DNA from: Wallemia ichthyophaga EXF-994
Lineage: Eukaryota; Fungi; Basidiomycota
NCBI RefSeq assembly: GCF_000400465.1
Contig: NW_008806278.1
Location: forward strand, 110,582 to 142,581
Direction of reading: 5' to 3'
DNA length: 32,000 nt
Below are positions 22,921 through 30,111 of the stretch, piece after piece. Position numbers and translations under genes: made by a program. Below the pieces are notes generated by a model. The model ran no database searches and had not been told where the DNA came from. It saw only the letters and a list, made by a program, of their open reading frames with translations. Position 1 is the first letter of the stretch; each line of letters starts with the position of its first letter.

Positions 22921-24036
22921 ATGAAAAATAAATTAGTTGAATGGATAAATAGTGAGGAGAGTTATCTAAATTTGGATATTAGAACACTAGCCTATGCAAC
23001 TCAATACAGTAATCATTATATGCTCAACAACCAGCCATTCAAATTCGTAGTCTTGTTTGGATATTTACTTACGATTGAACTTAAATTTGGTAAACTAATC
23101 TTTTATTTGGAAGATGGTACTGATGTTATACGTTGTTTTCTGCCTATTCAAACTGATTCTTCACCTCAATTCTCTATCGCAGACGCTGTTTCCATTACGG
23201 GAAAATTAGACACTTACAACAACAAACGCATCATTTACATCAACAGCATTGCGAAGCAATCGAATTTAAACTTGGAAACTCATTCTATCGCGCTTGTTGA
23301 TCAGGCTGTTCACAACTCTCACTCTTTCATCCTCCCTTCCTCCACAAATCTCATTAAACAATCTGTAGACTCCCAAACTCGCCCTAGAAAGAAACCTAAG
23401 CTTACTTCGAAACTCTCTCATCCTTCGAAACTCTCTCACAATGACCTTACCCCGCACACTTTCGAGATTTACATGAAGAATTTCATCAATCTCAATTCAC
23501 AGCATAACATATCTATCTTATCACTCAAACTGAGTAACTCTCTACGACTACTCGCTCGAAGGCTTTACGATTTGAGACATCAGACAAGACTTAATCCATC
23601 ATCATCCTCGGAATCAAAACACGCCAAGATAGATAGGTTATACACTCAATCACTCAATAATTTAGTGAAGAAAGGAGAACTCATCGTATATGATGCTATT
23701 TCATTTGATTCTAGCTCGATCGAACTAACTGAGCCACCATCACAAGATGAAGATGACCCCCTAGAATCTGACTTGAGTGGTTTATACGAACACTACAAAT
23801 GTCCTTCTGGACCTCTACTTAAAGACGCGTTATTCAATGTCATGTCTAACCTCAAACATCAAGCATCTCTTCAAATCATCCACAATAAAGTCACAAACTA
23901 CCAAGAGAACCTCTCTACTCTCTCACAAGATAGCATCCAGATTGGTCTCGATTGGTTGGTAGAGTATGACTACGCTAGCGTCACTAAATGTGAAAACAAA
24001 CCCGATAAATATAAATTAACAATAGCTACCGACTAA
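22921..24036 (+). CDS. OB-fold protein, probably CST-complex subunit Stn1, 371 aa, intronless
   Basis: N-terminal OB-fold pattern VVLFGYL..YLEDGTDVIRC..VSITGKL..KRIIYINSI..NLETH resembles Stn1/RPA2 OB folds. Length and a helical C-terminal half fit Stn1 better than RPA2. The sequence is divergent, so the call is moderate. Confidence 0.6.
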   Translation: MKNKLVEWINSEESYLNLDIRTLAYATQYSNHYMLNNQPFKFVVLFGYLLTIELKFGKLIFYLEDGTDVIRCFLPIQTDSSPQFSIADAVSITGKLDTYNNKRIIYINSIAKQSNLNLETHSIALVDQAVHNSHSFILPSSTNLIKQSVDSQTRPRKKPKLTSKLSHPSKLSHNDLTPHTFEIYMKNFINLNSQHNISILSLKLSNSLRLLARRLYDLRHQTRLNPSSSSESKHAKIDRLYTQSLNNLVKKGELIVYDAISFDSSSIELTEPPSQDEDDPLESDLSGLYEHYKCPSGPLLKDALFNVMSNLKHQASLQIIHNKVTNYQENLSTLSQDSIQIGLDWLVEYDYASVTKCENKPDKYKLTIATD

Positions 24037-24506
24037 TAATCAACATAATACTCGTCAGGCTGATCAGCTGACGCGGGTTGCATACCAAAGTCATCCTCGC
24101 CGTTGTTAATACCCTCAATAGATATCTTATGGAACTCAGCCTTCATCTCATCCTGAAAATTGGCACACTCAGCCAACAAAGTCGTCGCAGCACTTTTAAG
24201 AGCATCTTTAGGGGTAATGGTATTAGCAACGGTCTGTACCCTAACCTCTGAACGTGGATTGAGTGGATGGGGCACTCTATAACCAGAAAATATCACGTCC
24301 TTGTTCTTTGTCATTTCATTGGAGATGAGATTAGCGATGGTGTGGTCTTGCCTATTTAAGGTGATAGTGCTGGTCGAAGGGATGCGCGAATCGTCGACGA
24401 CGCTGACTCTTAGTGTGTATTAGACGTGGCCGCGAAGGTATCAGGCAACCCACTTAGGCTCTTCATCTGGAACAATAAACAATTCTGATCTATTTGGTGC
24501 GTTCAT
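24033..24506 (-). CDS. RPB11: RNA polymerase II subunit RPB11, ~142 aa
   Basis: Exons 24506-24454 and 24408-24033; 45-nt intron 24453-24409. MNAPNRSELF..QDHTIANLI..FSGYRVPHPL..RVQT..TPKDAL. YRVPHPL favours RPB11 over AC19. About 25 aa of acidic C-terminal tail. Confidence 0.92.
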
Positions 24507-24530
24507 GAGGTGTTATACAAGTGGGTCAAT

Positions 24531-24725
24531 CTAATAGAAAGGCGAGGTTAGATGGGTTTGGTTATCTACGCCAGCCACGCTTCCACGTTTCAGAATGTGG
24601 TAAAGTCTGATGTCGACATGCGCTGTGCATTAAGACAGGGATAACTGTAAGAAAGTACTTCTCATCAGGGTGTACAGCGTGTACAACGCAGAAGCGTGGA
24701 TGGCTGTAGCTATGGCTAGACTTAC
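24531..24725 (-). other. RPB11 5'UTR intron 2 (195 nt), snoRNA host
   Basis: GTAAGT donor at 24725, CTAAC branch at 24551-24547, pyrimidine tract and TAG acceptor ending at 24531. This leaves a 24-nt leader before the RPB11 ATG. Confidence 0.75.
24587..24672 (-). ncRNA. SNR38: Box C/D snoRNA, snR38-like (guide for LSU Gm2815 equivalent)
   Basis: C box TGATGA (24667-24662); 13-nt antisense CAGTTATCCCTGT (24647-24635) complementary to LSU ACAGGGAUAACUG; D' variant CTTA (24634-24631); D box CTGA (24593-24590). The +5 rule selects the middle G of GGG, i.e. yeast G2815 in the peptidyl transferase centre. End coordinates are approximate. Confidence 0.88.
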
Positions 24726-24727
24726 AC

Positions 24728-24903
24728 CTAGAAGGGTTGTGAGTGGGAGTTGTGTGGGTGCAAGACACCAGAGCAGATTTGATCAGTAAGAGATTCCTGT
24801 GTCTGCACGTATAGTTTGATTATCTAGCTACTAAGACGATTGACAGATTGATTTGGATTTTTGATATTCCTCATTTCAGCCTGGTGTCTTGTGCGCTACT
24901 CAC
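24728..24903 (-). other. RPB11 5'UTR intron 1 (176 nt), snoRNA host
   Basis: GTGAGT donor at 24903, CTCAC branch-like motif at 24743-24739 (the same variant occurs in the KAP120 and NOP58 introns), TAG acceptor ending at 24728. Confidence 0.7.
24780..24878 (-). ncRNA. Box C/D snoRNA, SNORD110-like (guide for SSU U1231 yeast / Um1288 human equivalent)
   Basis: C box variant ATGAGGA (24874-24868) and D box CTGA (24786-24783), closed by a TGA/TCA stem in kink-turn geometry. 14-nt antisense TCAATCTGTCAATC (24851-24838) is complementary to SSU GAUUGACAGAUUGA and is followed 2 nt later by D' CTTA (24835-24832). Flanked by an 11-bp perfect inverted repeat. Confidence 0.8.
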
Positions 24904-24945
24904 AATTATTTTTATAGTGGGTGTACGGGAGAAGGCGCGCGGTTG

Positions 24946-24960
24946 TTTATATAGGGTGGG
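24946..24960 (-). promoter_or_regulatory. CCCACCC-TATATAAA promoter element for the snoRNA-host/RPB11 transcript
   Basis: TATATAAA at 24953-24946 lies about 43 nt upstream of the first donor. It overlaps an ACCCTA core resembling telo-box or Homol-E elements. Confidence 0.55.
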
Positions 24961-25370: not shown

Positions 25371-27009
25371 ATGGATCGTCCTCAATCACCAGATTCTGCT
25401 CTACAAGTAGACAGGCACAGCGTCTTTTCAAGTTCACACTCTAAATCCCCTTCTGATGTCGAGTCTGCGAAAAACAAAGCAATTCTGACCGCGCAGACAA
25501 ACGAATTCGGCTATGTCCAGGAAATGCCCAAGCACCGCTCACTAGCGAGTATTTTGTTTCTTGCGGTGGCTATTGCTGCTATACCTTATGGTCTCTCGAC
25601 AACAATCCTCTATCCACTCACAAACGGCGGCTCGAGTGCTGTCATCTGGGGCTGGGTGATGATGGCGGTGATAACGCAGTGCGTTGCTGTCAGTCTGGCT
25701 GAGATATGCTCTCGCTATCCAGTGGCTGGTGGGGCATACTATTGGTCGTACATGCTCAGTCCGCCGCGCTACGCGAAGCTCAACTCGTACATCTGCGGAT
25801 GGGTGTATCTAGTCGGCAACTGGACGGTCACCCTCGCCGTCAACTTCGGTACCACGCAGCTCTTCCTCGGCGGGCTCAACCTGCTCTATCCTGACTTTGT
25901 AGCCAACCAATGGCAGACGGTGCTGACATTCTGGGCATTGTCTATAGTGACGACAGTGATAAGCTGCGTTCCTGGCAAGTATCTCAAGTATCTCGACCAC
26001 TTCTGTCTCGTGTGGACAGTCGCAGGGCTGCTCGCTATCCTCGTCGGGCTCTCTGTGAGAGCTGGCGCAGGGCGCAGGAGTGCGCGCTGGGTGTTCGGCG
26101 CTTTCGATAATGCAGAAAGCGGCTGGCCTAGTGGATGGTCCTTCTTTATTGGACTGCTTATGGGCAGCTATACACTCAGCTCAACAGCCATGATTAGCTC
26201 TATGTGCGAGGAGGTCCTCGATGCAGACACGGTTGTCCCTCGCGCTATAATGGCCAATATCCCACTCTCTTTTGGCACCGGACTTATCTTTCTCCTCCCG
26301 CTCCTCTTCACGATGCCCGCTGTGGATGCTGTCCTCGAGGGCACGAGCGGCCAGCCTGTCGTCGAATGCTTCCGCTATGTGATGGGATACGAGGGCGGGG
26401 CATTTGGGCTATTTTTTATCGTCTTCTTGATTGTGGGAGGGATTTTTGCTGGTATGCGTCTGACTGACACACACTCCATTACAGGGTATCTTTTCAGGTA
26501 TAGGTTGCACTACAGCGGCAAGTCGCCTCACTTGGGCATTCGCCCGCGACAATGCTATACCGTTCAGCGGGCTGATTAAGCAGGTCAACCCAACACTCGA
26601 ACTCCCCTTTAACGCTATCCTCCTGTCTACAGCCGTGCAGATGGTGCTTGGGTGTGTTTATTTCGGTTCGACAGCCGCATTTAATGCGTTTTCCTCGGTC
26701 AGCGTTATCTGTCTGGGTTGCTCCAATCTCGTCCCAATCACGATATCATTCTGTGAAGGTCGACATGCTATCAGCGATGCAAAATTTAACGCGGGTAAGT
26801 TAGGCGGAGTGTGTAACGTCGTCAGTATCGCTTGGTTCGCTTTCGCTATTCCCCTCTTCTGCTTCCCGACCACAGCTCCACCGACTAAGGAAAGTATGAA
26901 CTACGCCTCTGTCGTCTTTGTTGGGTTCCTCGCCATTAGCGCTGCTTACTATCTTGCTTACGGGAGGAAGAAGTTTGATGGCCCGCCGACGACCCACTTT
27001 AAGGAGTAG
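25371..27009 (+). CDS. APC-superfamily amino acid/GABA/choline permease (ACT family), ~530 aa
   Basis: Exons 25371-26451 and 26498-27009; 46-nt intron 26452-26497. About 12 hydrophobic segments; SLAEICSRYPVAGGAYYWS, MCEEV, SRLTWAFARDNAIP, MNYASVV. Confidence 0.9.
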
Positions 27010-27146: not shown

Positions 27147-30111
27147 TTAAGACATGGTCTCATTAATAAATGCGACGAGCTGCGCAACGACAGTGTGATC
27201 GGCATTTGCGAGGAAAGACTGATTAAAAGCGTCAGGACCGCCCGGAAAGGATTGTTGGGCGTGAGCGAAGCTATGAGAGATAAGAGGGGGAATGGGGAGT
27301 GCGGCGAGGGGGTCAGTGGAGAAGAGGGTGAGTCTGCGCGTCTTCTCGCAAGTGCCTTCATCACCGACGGCGTTGAGGAGGGGGTGTGTGATAGGGGTGT
27401 GAGAGTGAGTGTGGGGAGTAGTTGAGTCGGGCTGCTCTCCATAAGCCACAGCATCCAGGTGATTCTCCCTAATCTGGGCGAGGATATCTACAAATATGCT
27501 ACTGAGCTCAGCAAGGCGAGTGAGAACGAGTGGTATGCCGTGCTCGACGAGTCTAGCTAGCCCAGCAGCTGCGAGAGCGCGACTGTACTCGTCGGAAATG
27601 TTATCCCACCTATCGCACCACCTGTCGAGGAGAGCGACGAGCGTGGTTTGTGGAGACACACCGAGCACCTCCGCGGCGCATTCGAGAAGATGTAGAAGGA
27701 GGGGTGTATCAACGAGGGCGATGCGCGCGCACACAACCACGAGCTGCGCAGAGAGAAGCACCGACTCGCTCTCAGAAAGCAGCTTGCTAACTATGGCAGG
27801 GAAGAGCCCAGAGGTGTGCATGTCCCCCCACCAGGTGGCAGGTGGGGCGATTAGGGCGGCGAGGTGGACGAGGTGAATTGCTTGTGCGCGTACAGCATCG
27901 CTCGCATACTCCACCACACCGGCGCACGCTCGGAACAGAAGCTGGGCTGTCTCGGACTCACTCACCACCGCCATCCCACTGAGATACATGTGCGACTCGA
28001 TGAGAGCGCCTGCTGGCTCGCTCAGGTCGACGTCGTTGGCGAATAGCTCCACCGCCAGCGGGAATAGCCCGTGGATGGAATCCGTGTGTCCCGCTGCGTG
28101 CTTGAGCGTAACCTGCCACAACTCTATCGCGTCCATGTCGATGTATGGTTTGCCCTGGGTACGTGAGTGGGTATGTGCGCAGCGCAGAGCATCAACCCAC
28201 CTGTGCTGGATCCAGCGCTGTGCGTATGAGCGGCACGACTAGTGGGAGAGCACGTTGGCTGCCCTCCTGCATAACGCACACGAGACGAGCGAGCAACGCC
28301 AGCATGCCGCCGCGAAGGTGCCAATCGGCGTCGGCGCTAGAATCGCCATCAGCCTCCCACAGCCCGCCTACCATTTCGAGGAGAGGAAGGGCGTGGGGCA
28401 TGGACATATCCCCGACTTGATCCACGATACACGTGAGGCTTGCGAGCACCTTGGTCTTGATTTCGCCCAGTGTGCACGCAGCGAGAATGCGCATCAGCTC
28501 AGCCACCACCGCCCCCATGTAGGGCTCGAAGAGGGCAGGAGCAAAGTCCCACGTGTCTACTATCCCAGCGAGGGCAATCGCAGCTGAAATCTGCACTGCG
28601 ACGTCGTTCTCGGCATCTTGCGCGCGCAGACAATGCAGTATGATTGTGTACACTTTCGTGCGTGCGCTTGGCGTGAGATTCTCACCAGCGAACCGCCCAA
28701 CGAGGATAGCTATGCGACGGCGCAGGATGCGGCCGTGGCCTACACTGTCCACCTGCACCTCGGGGATCAGCGTAGTGTCGAGCCAGCGCTCAAACGATAC
28801 GTGGTCATAGAGGTATTCTGCACACTTGGCCACTATGCGGTACACGCCCTCTTTGTAGATGACGTCGCTGCTCTCGGCGGCAGAGTGGAGGAGGGATGTG
28901 AGGTGCGCGCCAACGGCCCCACGTCGCTTGATTAGCACAGCGAGAACAAGGTTCTGGGCACACGGGCGCAGATCCACCTCCCAGTGGTCGAGGTCGTCCT
29001 CGTAGACCCAAGTCTCAGGATCAGATTCCCAGCGGGCGAGGTCGGCGGGAGTGAGAGGGAGGAAGCGGCGGGCGACAAGGTCGACGACTTGGACGGCAAA
29101 GTCGTCGGAGAGGGAGGCGTGTGGGTTGAGCTTGTGCGGCGCGTGGGGGACCCAGTCGGCGAGGGAGAGTTTGAGGATGAGGAGGGCGTGGATGAGGTAT
29201 TTAGGAGGGGCGGCGGGTGAGGATGGGTGCGTGCAGTGGGCGATTTGCGAGTACAAGATCGGTATAAGCGCCTCGATGCCTTGGATGCCGCGGAAACGGC
29301 CTTGATTGGACTGCTGGAGACGGAGGAGGAAGCGTGTGTGGGCGTTGAGAAGCTGGAGGGGCGGGGAGCGCGATGAGTGGGTGCAGTCGAGTAGGCGGGG
29401 GAGGAGGGAGAGCTGGAGCTGGGTGAATTGCACCGTGTTGGAGCGCTCATCGCCCGAGCACCGCGACCAGTTGTGGAGGGAGAGCGAGGCGAGCACCTTG
29501 TACGCGTACGTCGCCAGGGATATCCAATGGGGGTGGGAGGCTAGGTGGGAGAAGGCCAGCTGGTAGACAGCCAAAGCAAAGGGGAAGAGGGACGCGTAGA
29601 GAAGGGGGAAGACCCTGTTGGCGATTCTGATAGACGCGATTTCCTTGGTGATTCGGTGGAGAGCGTACAAGGCGTGGCTGAGCCGGAGGAGGTGGCCGGG
29701 CTCGCTCACAGCCAGCTCCGGAGACAGACGCGCCTTGATGTCGTCGACCAAGCCTGGCCAGAAGCGCGGGTAGTCGATGCGGGCCAATTTGGAGAGAATG
29801 AGCGCGTTGAGCTCGGTGAGCTTGGCGTCGGGGCTGTCGAAAAAGTCGAGGCAGCGGGCGCGGATGGCGTGCCTGGCCCCGGGGGACAGCTGGGGAGCAC
29901 GGATGTTGCGCCAGTAGGGAAGGATGTTGTTCTTCACGAGGAGGATCGCCGCGAGGGAGAGCGTCGGGTCGGGGGAACGCAGGGAGAAGTCGTGCAGCCC
30001 GTCCAGCGCATCTGGCTGCCTCACGAAGGCATCGACAGCGTCGAGTACATTTACGCCGTCATCCACAATTTGTGCACTTGCCAATTTTAATAAATTTTCA
30101 ACCGAGTGCAT
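27147..30111 (-). CDS. KAP120: Importin-beta family karyopherin, importin-11/Kap120-like, ~972 aa
   Basis: ATG at 30111 (the ORF-track start is a non-ATG codon 25 codons upstream). Exons 30111-28201 and 28154-27147; 46-nt intron 28200-28155. IBN-N region AILLVKNNILPYWR, SKLARIDYPRFWPGL, WESDPETWVYE, DLRPCAQ, ILRRRIAILVG, DFAPALFEPY. Confidence 0.85.

Follow-up and report, generated by a model that had tools for sequence, protein, structure and literature searches.

The yeast snoRNA snR38 sits in an intron of TEF4. In Neurospora crassa, 45 of the 55 C/D snoRNAs are intron-encoded (PMC2780460). The window analyzed here, a 32,000-nucleotide (nt) stretch of DNA from the salt-loving fungus Wallemia ichthyophaga EXF-994, holds on its minus strand what is probably a locus of this known kind, an intron-encoded snoRNA host gene, with a predicted spacer exon that is unusually small. 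As in other intronic C/D hosts, there is one snoRNA per intron, the splice signals are canonical, flanking complementarity joins boxes C and D, the snoRNA lies about 55 to 60 nt upstream of the 3' splice site, and the snR38 family found here is intronic in other fungi as well. Unlike those hosts, this locus uses the leader of RPB11 and places two consecutive host introns only 2 nt apart. It also resembles UHG/GAS5-type hosts and N. crassa clusters I to V, where several snoRNAs occupy their own introns between short, poorly conserved non-coding exons, but the RPB11 transcript is protein-coding, snoRNA introns are found in its 5' leader only, and the predicted exon between them is 2 nt long.

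The splicing of such a leader has three described parallels. Exons of 1 nt are known from Arabidopsis (PMC4674806) and from Fusarium CYP621A (PMC12940212); like them, the exon predicted here is smaller than what either splice-site complex covers and has canonical AG and GT flanks. The 1-nt exons are coding, and the reading frame dictates their length; the exon predicted here is non-coding and varies freely between lineages, at 2, 5, 8, or 12 nt. Recursive splicing, as in the long introns of Drosophila and mammals or in the 375-nt intron of Cryptococcus neoformans BOT1, which splits into 210 and 165 nt (bioRxiv 10.1101/224170), likewise has an AG abutting a GT and produces two lariats in obligatory sequence. 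The RPB11 leader departs from it in having a strong donor 2 nt past the AG, a weak donor at the junction itself, and exons of 5 to 12 nt in relatives, and its purpose appears to be the separation of snoRNAs rather than the removal of a very long intron. Fungal stwintrons (PMC6616335) are also complex intervening sequences that need consecutive splicing reactions, but no internal intron interrupts a splice signal in the RPB11 leader.

Layout of the RPB11 leader

An earlier, sequence-only reading of the window had listed a series of minus-strand landmarks upstream of RPB11. On re-reading the sequence we found all of them where it had placed them (Table 1), and the two leader introns measure exactly the 176 and 195 nt that it gave. 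It had set these lengths against 26 coding introns of 43 to 56 nt. This comparison was checked in part: about 11 candidates with recurrent donors are 44 to 52 nt long. The ORF-joining intron scan from which they come was noisy, with 110 candidates that are mostly false, and only recurrent donor hexamers and lengths were used from it. Genome-wide, the mean intron length of W. ichthyophaga is 61 bp (PMC3849046). Every donor of the RPB11 locus (12/12) reads GTGAGT, GTAAGT, or GTGGGT; GTGGGT and GTGAGT are recurrent donors elsewhere in the window, and CTNAC/CTNAT motifs are present in its credible coding introns too.

Table 1. Features of the RPB11 locus on the minus strand, in positions of the window
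Feature	Position	Strand	Sequence or basis
TATA box	24946..24953	-	TATATAAA; sequence; spacing conserved
Probable non-coding exon 1 with initiator-like motif	24904..24919	-	CACTATAAAAATAATT; about 15 nt probably transcribed; ends at first donor
Leader intron 1, 176 nt	24728..24903	-	GTGAGT (24903) ... CTCAC ... TTCTAG
snoRNA 1 external stem, 5' arm	24881..24891	-	CAAGACACCAG; pairs with 24761-24771
Box C/D snoRNA 1, C to D box, 92 nt	24783..24874	-	boxes, lineage conservation
snoRNA 1 C box	24874-24868	-	AUGAGGA; one mismatch to RUGAUGA, position 5
snoRNA 1 D' guide	24836..24853	-	AAUCAAUCUGUCAAUCGU; complementary to 18S GGAUUGACAGAUUG
snoRNA 1 D' box	24835-24832	-	CUUA
snoRNA 1 C'-like box	24826-24820	-	UAGAUAA
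snoRNA 1 D guide	24787..24804	-	AGACACAGGAAUCUCUUA; core GGAAUCUCUU invariant across lineages
snoRNA 1 D box	24786-24783	-	CUGA
snoRNA 1 external stem, 3' arm	24761..24771	-	CTGGTGTCTTG; pairs with 24881-24891
Intron 1 branch-point motif	24739..24743	-	CTCAC; about 12 nt upstream of AG
Predicted 2-nt non-coding exon 2	24726..24727	-	GT; between TAG (24730-24728) and GTAAGT (24725-24720)
Leader intron 2, 195 nt	24531..24725	-	GTAAGT (24725-24720) ... CTAAC ... TATTAG
snoRNA 2 external stem, 5' arm core	24691..24699	-	CCACGCTTC; full arm about 24680-24706
Box C/D snoRNA 2, snR38/snoR38 family	24590..24668	-	boxes, Rfam, guide
snoRNA 2 C box	24668-24662	-	CUGAUGA
snoRNA 2 D' guide	24635..24648	-	ACAGUUAUCCCUGU; complementary to 25S ACAGGGAUAACUG; predicted target G2815 (yeast numbering)
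snoRNA 2 D' box	24634-24631	-	CUUA
snoRNA 2 C' box	24619-24613	-	AUGUCGA
snoRNA 2 D guide	24594..24605	-	CUUUACCACAUU; invariant across lineages
snoRNA 2 D box	24593-24590	-	CUGA
snoRNA 2 external stem, 3' arm core	24575..24583	-	GAAGCGTGG; complementarity
Intron 2 branch-point motif	24547..24551	-	CTAAC; sequence
Exon 3 leader, 24 nt	24507..24530	-	between TAG (ends 24531) and RPB11 ATG 24506
RPB11 coding region	24033..24506	-	exon 24506-24454, intron 24453-24409, exon 24408-24033 including stop

We compared the window with six further W. ichthyophaga assemblies (L009 to L014), a related sequence (L006), five W. mellicola strains, and an AT-rich lineage. The region upstream of RPB11 has the same layout in the three other diverged lineages, four in all. 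The common order is the TATA/exon-1 motif, GTRAGT, snoRNA 1, branch point, YAG, a tiny exon, GTAAGT, snoRNA 2, branch point, YAG, a short leader, and the ATG. Its recurrence in full outside W. ichthyophaga makes the layout more than a chance arrangement. Intron 1 is 171 to 229 nt long in the relatives, and its donor, its branch motif, and the first YAG downstream are kept in four lineages. Between lineages, the snoRNA cores are 76 to 100% identical (76 to 99% for snoRNA 1, 83 to 100% for snoRNA 2), compared with 30 to 65% for the intron flanks and 81 to 94% for coding exon 1.

Box C/D snoRNAs in the leader introns

The assignment of one snoRNA to each leader intron holds up: each is bracketed by canonical splice signals, and the arrangement is kept in four lineages. 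The available features support the view that both are genuine intron-encoded box C/D snoRNAs. Their boxes, their D' guides, which fall on known rRNA methylation sites by the fifth-nucleotide rule, and their complementary, lineage-specific stems agree with the earlier proposal that they are two rRNA-methylation guides. All four lineages retain the C and D boxes of both, although C-box positions 2, 5, and 6 vary to some extent; in the AT-rich lineage, the C box of snoRNA 1 is AUGAAAA. This form and the AUGAGGA of the window depart from RUGAUGA, and both D' boxes of the window read CUUA, deviations that count against the assignment.

Each snoRNA is enclosed by an external stem. In RNAduplex calculations on five sequences, the stems of both snoRNAs gave z scores of -3.8 to -6.9, and in each case 0/300 shuffles were as stable. 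In the window, the duplex has an energy of -23.7 kcal/mol for snoRNA 1 (z = -6.4; 0/300 shuffles as stable) and -37.8 kcal/mol for snoRNA 2 (z = -5.1; 0/300), and the minimum-energy folds of both leader introns include these stems. The arm sequences are unrelated between lineages, and complementarity is retained each time. Within W. ichthyophaga, a C-to-T polymorphism lies just 3' of the 3' arm of the snoRNA 2 stem (GCGTGGCTGG to GCGTGGTTGG, L009 to L014); it turns a G-C pair into a G-U pair, and pairing is therefore kept.

Targets were mapped on yeast 18S, 25S, and 5.8S rRNA. The 18S and 25S sequences used for this were validated only by their exact lengths (1800 and 3396 nt) and by nucleotide identity at known methylated positions, of which 54 of 55 agree; the lone mismatch concerned A100 and was our own error. 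The D' guide of snoRNA 1 forms 14 Watson-Crick base pairs with its 18S complement in the window and 15 in L015, and U1231 (yeast numbering) lies opposite the fifth guide nucleotide upstream of D'. In N. crassa, 18S-Um1227 is guided by the intronic snoRNA CD44 through a 15-bp D' guide, and the same site is served by Schizosaccharomyces pombe snR82, Arabidopsis snoR14, and human HBII-55 (PMC2780460). Yeast U1231 would correspond to N. crassa U1227 and human U1288. Searches with snoRNA 1 from three lineages, together with two focused searches, returned no Rfam family at E <= 10 apart from one fragment, a 14-nt match to sR7 (13 bits, E = 0.48). Because there is no Rfam match, common ancestry with snR82/CD44/snoR14/HBII-55 (SNORD110) is unproven, and the kinship supported is that of the target.

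For snoRNA 2, the best Rfam family is snoR38 (RF00213), with 27.2 bits in the window, 41.8 in L015, and 32.9 in W. mellicola. All three scores fall below the Rfam gathering score of 45, with alignments that are full-length and E values of 0.045 to 1.2e-5. At gathering thresholds, Rfam reported nothing across the whole window, and the snoR38 matches come from permissive mode. The D' guide forms 13 Watson-Crick base pairs and sets the middle G of 25S ACAGGGAUAAC (yeast G2815) at the target position; the Rfam snoR38 consensus carries the identical guide. A listed homologue of snR38, snoR38Y, and human snR38 is the intronic N. crassa CD23, which guides 26S-Gm2773 (PMC2780460). Some 58 environmental snR38-like genes on metagenome contigs have the same guide, and some of these also share the CUUA D' box and a UGUCGA C' box. 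RPB11 adjoins none of these roughly 58 genes, and the host association was traced in Wallemia-type lineages only.

The best matches of the two D-box guides to yeast 18S, 25S, and 5.8S rRNA are 8 to 9 bp long. The snoRNA 1 D guide has no match of at least 10 bp in these rRNAs, and the best match of the snoRNA 2 D guide is 8 bp, at 18S U152. U6 and U2 were considered as D-guide targets and rejected. These two snoRNAs are an addition for Wallemia, a genus reported to have lost many snoRNAs (PMC5824354).

The predicted exon between the snoRNA introns

The sequence-only reading had left the junction of the two introns as either a 2-nt exon or a zero-length recursive site. Lineage comparison favors the first and speaks against the second. 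The junction, TTCTAG-GT-GTAAGT, is identical in the six other W. ichthyophaga assemblies. GT is flanked by a canonical acceptor and a canonical donor, and the relatives have an orthologous exon in the same place of 12, 5, or 8 nt compared with 2 nt in the window: GTACTTTATTTA in L006, GTATA in the five W. mellicola strains, and GTATTTAT or GTATTAAT in the AT-rich lineage.

If the site were recursive, intron 1 would leave first, AATT would then be followed by GTGTAA as the donor of intron 2, and the finished leader would read AATT-ATTGACCC. The AG is indeed directly followed by GT (24728/24727), and zero-nucleotide-exon recursive splicing has been demonstrated in a basidiomycete, in C. neoformans BOT1 (bioRxiv 10.1101/224170). 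GTGTAA, however, has T, A, and A at +4 to +6 where every donor of the locus has R, G, and T; G at +5 and T at +6 are present in 12/12. A perfect GTAAGT, invariant across all lineages, stands 2 nt downstream. The bases after the AG in relatives (GTATAG, GTACTT, GTATTT) also lack G at +5. These hexamers and GTATTA are unusable as donors, and recursion is thus not a conserved mechanism here. With an invariant GTAAGT and no good donor right after the AG, the micro-exon is favored, and we regard recursive splicing at this site as unlikely.

It is similarly improbable that the middle exon is mostly skipped. Exon 1 would then join exon 3, and a single 373-nt lariat with both snoRNAs would be parted by an endonuclease. 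In favor of this, so small an exon poses a steric problem, and RNase III might in principle cut the long external stems, which reach about 26 bp in the AT-rich lineage. Exon skipping also occurs in snoRNA host transcripts of N. crassa (PMC2780460). Against it, four lineages keep the internal branch point, YAG, and GTAAGT but not the neighboring sequence, which argues that these signals are under selection. Past the CTCAC branch motif, the AG at 24728 is the first to occur, and the transcriptome study of W. ichthyophaga reported only a single case of exon skipping (PMC3849046).

Returning to the 2-nt exon, we hold with about even confidence that the GT at 24727-24726 is a real exon, constitutively included, which serves only as a pivot between two sequentially removed snoRNA introns. 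The AG...GTAAGT junction would serve to give each snoRNA an intron of its own. Because the middle exon is non-coding, its length would be free to drift, as the 12, 8, and 5 nt of the relatives suggest, and a deletion of about 10 nt may have left only GT in W. ichthyophaga. Two nucleotides leave no space for a 3' splice site complex and a U1-bound 5' splice site at the same time, so the leader introns would have to leave in succession. Whichever intron went first, the signals of the other would stay intact and the leader would read ...AATT-GT-ATTGACCC. The predicted junction string is AAAAATAATTGTATTGACCCACTTG, which contains AATTGTATTGACCC, for the micro-exon and AAAAATAATTATTGACCCACTTG for a zero-length site or skipping. 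A first exon of about 15 nt and an internal exon of 2 nt are each at the edge of known spliceosome capability, which counts against this reading.

If this is correct, the GT exon is the shortest documented in a basidiomycete, the series of 12, 8, 5, and 2 nt across Wallemia lineages traces how a spacer exon with no function dwindles toward a recursive site of zero length, and the locus is a natural system for the minimal distance between a 3' and a 5' splice site. The series carries no coding constraint and makes the limit on exon size and the ordering of splicing testable. In L006 and W. mellicola, a TAG shares its G with GTAAGT.

A proposed transcript model for the snoRNAs and RPB11

The sequences show the features described above, how well these are conserved, the pairing of the guides with rRNA, and the external stems. 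From these we propose that one Pol II transcript probably carries a three-exon non-coding leader with two snoRNA introns, followed by RPB11. Transcription would start about 15 nt upstream of 24903 and continue into the RPB11 coding sequence. The leader introns, long against coding introns of about 45 to 50 nt, would each contribute one box C/D snoRNA with its external stem. Splicing and debranching, followed by exonuclease trimming of each lariat down to the snoRNP, would yield from each pre-mRNA one snR82/CD44-type guide for methylation at the 18S U1231 equivalent, one snR38-type guide for the 25S G2815 equivalent, and one RPB11 mRNA. An upstream ATG is absent from the spliced leader, whether GT is retained or lost.

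Least probable among the alternatives that we weighed is an independent mono- or dicistronic snoRNA unit transcribed from the TATA elements, with RPB11 starting near its ATG and the splice-like motifs unused. Yeasts commonly have independent and polycistronic snoRNA genes, and the exon-1 motif of this species, TATAAAAATAA (24916), which precedes the snoRNA 1 external stem by about 30 nt, could be read as a second TATA box. This motif is, however, TGTAAAA, a poor TATA box, in three of four lineages, and as TGTAAAAATTA or TATAAAAATAA it directly adjoins GTRAGT on the 5' side of that donor in 4/4. A canonical TATA box lies upstream of it at a fixed distance, exactly 35 nt from start to start of the CAYTRTAAAAAT motif in an ungapped alignment of the window, L006, and W. 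mellicola. Each snoRNA has a full set of splice signals around it (donor, branch point, and acceptor) in every lineage, and the 64 to 125 nt between the D box of snoRNA 2 and the ATG are too few to leave room for a separate RPB11 promoter. A stwintron was rejected, both introns having a complete, uninterrupted donor, branch point, and acceptor.

The sequence-only reading had further suggested that the single transcript would couple snoRNA supply to the expression of a Pol II subunit. Regulatory coupling that goes beyond co-transcription has no support. If the single-transcript model holds, the link between the snoRNAs and RPB11 would be co-expression, as for any intronic snoRNA, and no special circuit is suggested.

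The host coding sequence joins into a 142-amino-acid (aa) product across one 45-nt coding intron (GTGGGT...AG). RPB11 proteins of PF13656 match this product, with 74 to 99% identity to Wallemia RPB11 proteins; the best match, at 99%, is an rpb11 fragment of W. ichthyophaga EXF-994. The protein search turned up no complete W. ichthyophaga RPB11, no transcript-derived contig encoding the whole protein, and no short contigs for W. mellicola; the public W. ichthyophaga records are fragments of 79 and 93 aa, a gene model that the 142-aa product corrects.

Layout and conservation of the RPB11 leader

The sequence-only reading had placed two box C/D snoRNAs in the introns of the RPB11 leader, and comparison of the region in relatives offered a way to examine this proposal. 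Re-reading 24960-24500 on the minus strand, we found every landmark in place and confirmed both intron lengths, 176 and 195 nt.

Landmarks of the RPB11 leader (window positions; introns and snoRNAs numbered from the 5' end)
Feature	Position	Strand	Basis or remark
TATATAAA, TATA box	24953	-	sequence
Intron 1 donor, GTGAGT	24903	-	sequence
snoRNA 1, C/D type	ATGAGGA 24874; CTGA 24786	-	sequence
snoRNA 1 D-box guide with flanks, GGAAUCUCUU	24787-24804	-	invariant in all lineages
Intron 1 branch motif, CTCAC	24743	-	sequence
TTCTAG, then GT, then GTAAGT	TTCTAG ends 24728; GTAAGT starts 24725	-	sequence
snoRNA 2, C/D type	CTGATGA 24668; CTGA 24593	-	sequence
snoRNA 2 D-box guide with flanks, CUUUACCACAUU	24594-24605	-	invariant in all lineages
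Intron 2 branch motif, CTAAC	24551	-	sequence
TAG, 24-nt leader, RPB11 ATG	TAG ends 24531; ATG 24506	-	sequence

The orthologous locus was compared in six further W. ichthyophaga assemblies (L009-L014), in another species, with RPB11 88% identical (L006), in five W. mellicola strains (L001-L005), and in a more distant AT-rich lineage (RPB11 65% identical; upstream region read in L015, L016, L021, L023, L024, L026, and L027). Upstream of the ATG, the order of parts is identical in all of them: a conserved A/T-rich motif, GTRAGT, snoRNA 1, a branch motif, YAG, a very short exon, GTAAGT, snoRNA 2, a branch motif, YAG, and a short leader. Between lineages, the snoRNA cores (76-100% identity) are conserved as well as or better than the first coding exon (81-94%), while the surrounding intron retains only 30-65%, with the splice signals persisting in otherwise diverged flanks. 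Within 24570-24900, L009-L014 differ from the window at three polymorphic sites. At position +8 of intron 1, G is replaced by A; the other two are C-to-T changes, one in the spacer that follows the D box of snoRNA 1 and one in the 3' arm of the external stem around snoRNA 2, where a G-C pair becomes G-U. Boxes, guides, and splice signals are untouched. As far as sequence comparison reaches, the host interpretation is supported.

The intron 1 donor GTGAGT (24898-24903, minus strand) is perfectly complementary to the branch-site ACTCAC (24739-24744), and the predicted fold pairs the two. This may be a coincidence, as both motifs are consensus-like.

The RPB11 coding sequence contains a single 45-nt intron and encodes 142 amino acids (PF13656). 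Protein searches gave 99% identity with the rpb11 fragment of W. ichthyophaga EXF-994 and 74% with the protein of W. mellicola, which identifies the window as W. ichthyophaga or a strain very close to it. The W. ichthyophaga protein is represented in public records by fragments alone, one of 79 aa (NCBI protein P0011) and one of 93 aa (ORF call P0003), whereas the spliced 142-aa model (24033-24506, minus strand) aligns along its full length with the W. mellicola protein of 136 aa. W. ichthyophaga, L006, and W. mellicola have an amino-acid permease gene as the divergent neighbor. Synteny breaks upstream of RPB11 in the AT-rich lineage (L015 390-1730 versus window 25371-26579), where the neighbor is NMD3 on the same strand; the snoRNA leader architecture is kept nonetheless. 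On the other side, an ORF of 371 aa that matches no Pfam family (22921-24036, plus strand) is convergent with RPB11. The 3' ends of the two share 4 nt, which interlocks their stop codons and requires overlapping 3' UTRs. The overlap recurs in L009-L013, with a 13-nt gap in L006 and a 2-nt gap in the AT-rich lineage. GC content of the window, about 45%, agrees with the published value for the species, 45.35% (PMC3849046); the 2-kb bin at 28001-30000 reaches 62%, versus 41-54% elsewhere in the window.

Identity of the two snoRNAs

For snoRNA 2, the best Rfam family in three lineages was snoR38 (RF00213), with full-length alignments scoring 27.2, 41.8, and 32.9 bits, all short of the 45-bit gathering threshold. 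The D' guide of snoRNA 2, ACAGUUAUCCCUGU, matches the family consensus exactly and is complementary to 25S rRNA over 13 Watson-Crick pairs; the fifth position falls on the middle G of ACAGGGAUAAC, which is yeast G2815, the snR38 site. The Neurospora crassa homologue listed for yeast and S. pombe snR38, plant snoR38Y, and human snR38 is CD23 (26S-Gm2773, D' guide), also intronic (PMC2780460). Rfam searches returned no family for snoRNA 1. Its D' guide pairs with GGAUUGACAGAUUG of 18S rRNA through 14 Watson-Crick pairs in the window and 15 in the AT-rich lineage, placing the fifth position on U1231 (yeast numbering). The group of S. pombe snR82, Arabidopsis snoR14, and human HBII-55 also includes N. 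crassa CD44, whose D' guide pairs over 15 bp at 18S-Um1227 (PMC2780460). Targets were mapped on hand-entered yeast rRNA sequences, validated only through their exact lengths (1800 and 3396 nt) and the base identity at known methylated positions.

In every lineage an external stem encloses each snoRNA (z of -3.8 to -6.9 versus shuffled controls, 0/300 as stable), and minimum-energy folds of both leader introns include these stems. The arms are unrelated in sequence between lineages, so the retained pairing amounts to covariation. Weak points of the assignment are the snoRNA 1 C box, AUGAGGA, and the CUUA D' boxes of both snoRNAs, that of snoRNA 1 being CUGA in the AT-rich lineage. Despite their invariance, neither D-box guide has a match of at least 10 bp in yeast rRNA; they may pair with Wallemia-specific rRNA or an snRNA, or provide accessory pairing.

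The predicted short exon and its proposed splicing

The exon between the introns is GT (2 nt) in the window and the six W. ichthyophaga assemblies, GTACTTTATTTA (12 nt) in L006, GTATA (5 nt) in W. mellicola, and GTATTTAT or GTATTAAT (8 nt) in the AT-rich lineage, and a GTAAGT donor follows it in every lineage. The sequence-only reading had offered either a 2-nt exon or a zero-length recursive AG|GT site. For the latter, the six bases directly after AG would have to act as a donor. These are GTGTAA, GTACTT, GTATAG, GTATTT, and GTATTA, none with the G at +5 and T at +6 that are present in 12/12 donors of the locus and likewise in the recurrent window donors GTGGGT and GTGAGT. Together with the invariant GTAAGT, this argues for a short exon followed by GTAAGT as the conserved design and against a recursive site. 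We therefore favor the 2-nt exon, giving a predicted leader of AATT-GT-ATTGACCC; a 10-nt deletion leaving GT-GTAAGT in W. ichthyophaga would be the simplest history. With or without GT, the spliced leader contains no upstream ATG.

What is established about the processing of intronic snoRNAs and about splice-site recognition suggests how such a leader might be handled. One snoRNA per intron would permit clean release of each by debranching and exonucleolytic trimming, which is likely why the internal AG...GTAAGT has been kept, while the length of the exon would be unconstrained because it is non-coding. Across 2-12 nt, complexes on the upstream branch point and 3' splice site could not sit beside one on the downstream 5' splice site, so the introns would be removed in sequence. 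Removing intron 1 first would leave AATTGT|GTAAGT and removing intron 2 first TTCTAG|GTATTG, both workable on paper. Such sequential removal would be mechanistically similar to the recursive splicing shown for Cryptococcus neoformans BOT1, with its zero-nucleotide exon (bioRxiv 10.1101/224170), and single-nucleotide exons are documented in Arabidopsis (PMC4674806) and Fusarium (PMC12940212).

Predicted transcription start and generality of the host

A canonical TATA box is present in the window, L006, and W. mellicola, and in each of them its start is exactly 35 nt upstream of the start of the conserved CAYTRTAAAAAT motif, which runs up to the first donor. This is the classic TATA-to-initiator distance and predicts a length of about 15-17 nt for exon 1. 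There is some room for a promoter dedicated to snoRNA 1, as the initiator-like motif in W. ichthyophaga doubles as a TATA box (TATAAAAA at 24916). The suggested special coupling of snoRNA supply to Pol II expression finds nothing here beyond ordinary co-transcription.

Intron-hosted C/D snoRNAs, one per intron of a housekeeping host, are a well-known kind. What appears new is the RPB11 leader as host in Wallemia, the two snoRNAs, which had no earlier annotation, and the predicted 2-nt spacer exon with its comparative length series. A metagenome scan with the snR38 guide recovered snR38-like genes, about 58 in total, from a wide range of eukaryotes; none of the fetched flanks contained RPB11, and the association of snR38 with RPB11 was traced only within Wallemia-type lineages. 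Some environmental contigs carry tandem snR38-like pairs about 260 nt apart (L057 1379-1651, L094 736-1019), a cluster-type organization unlike the Wallemia arrangement.
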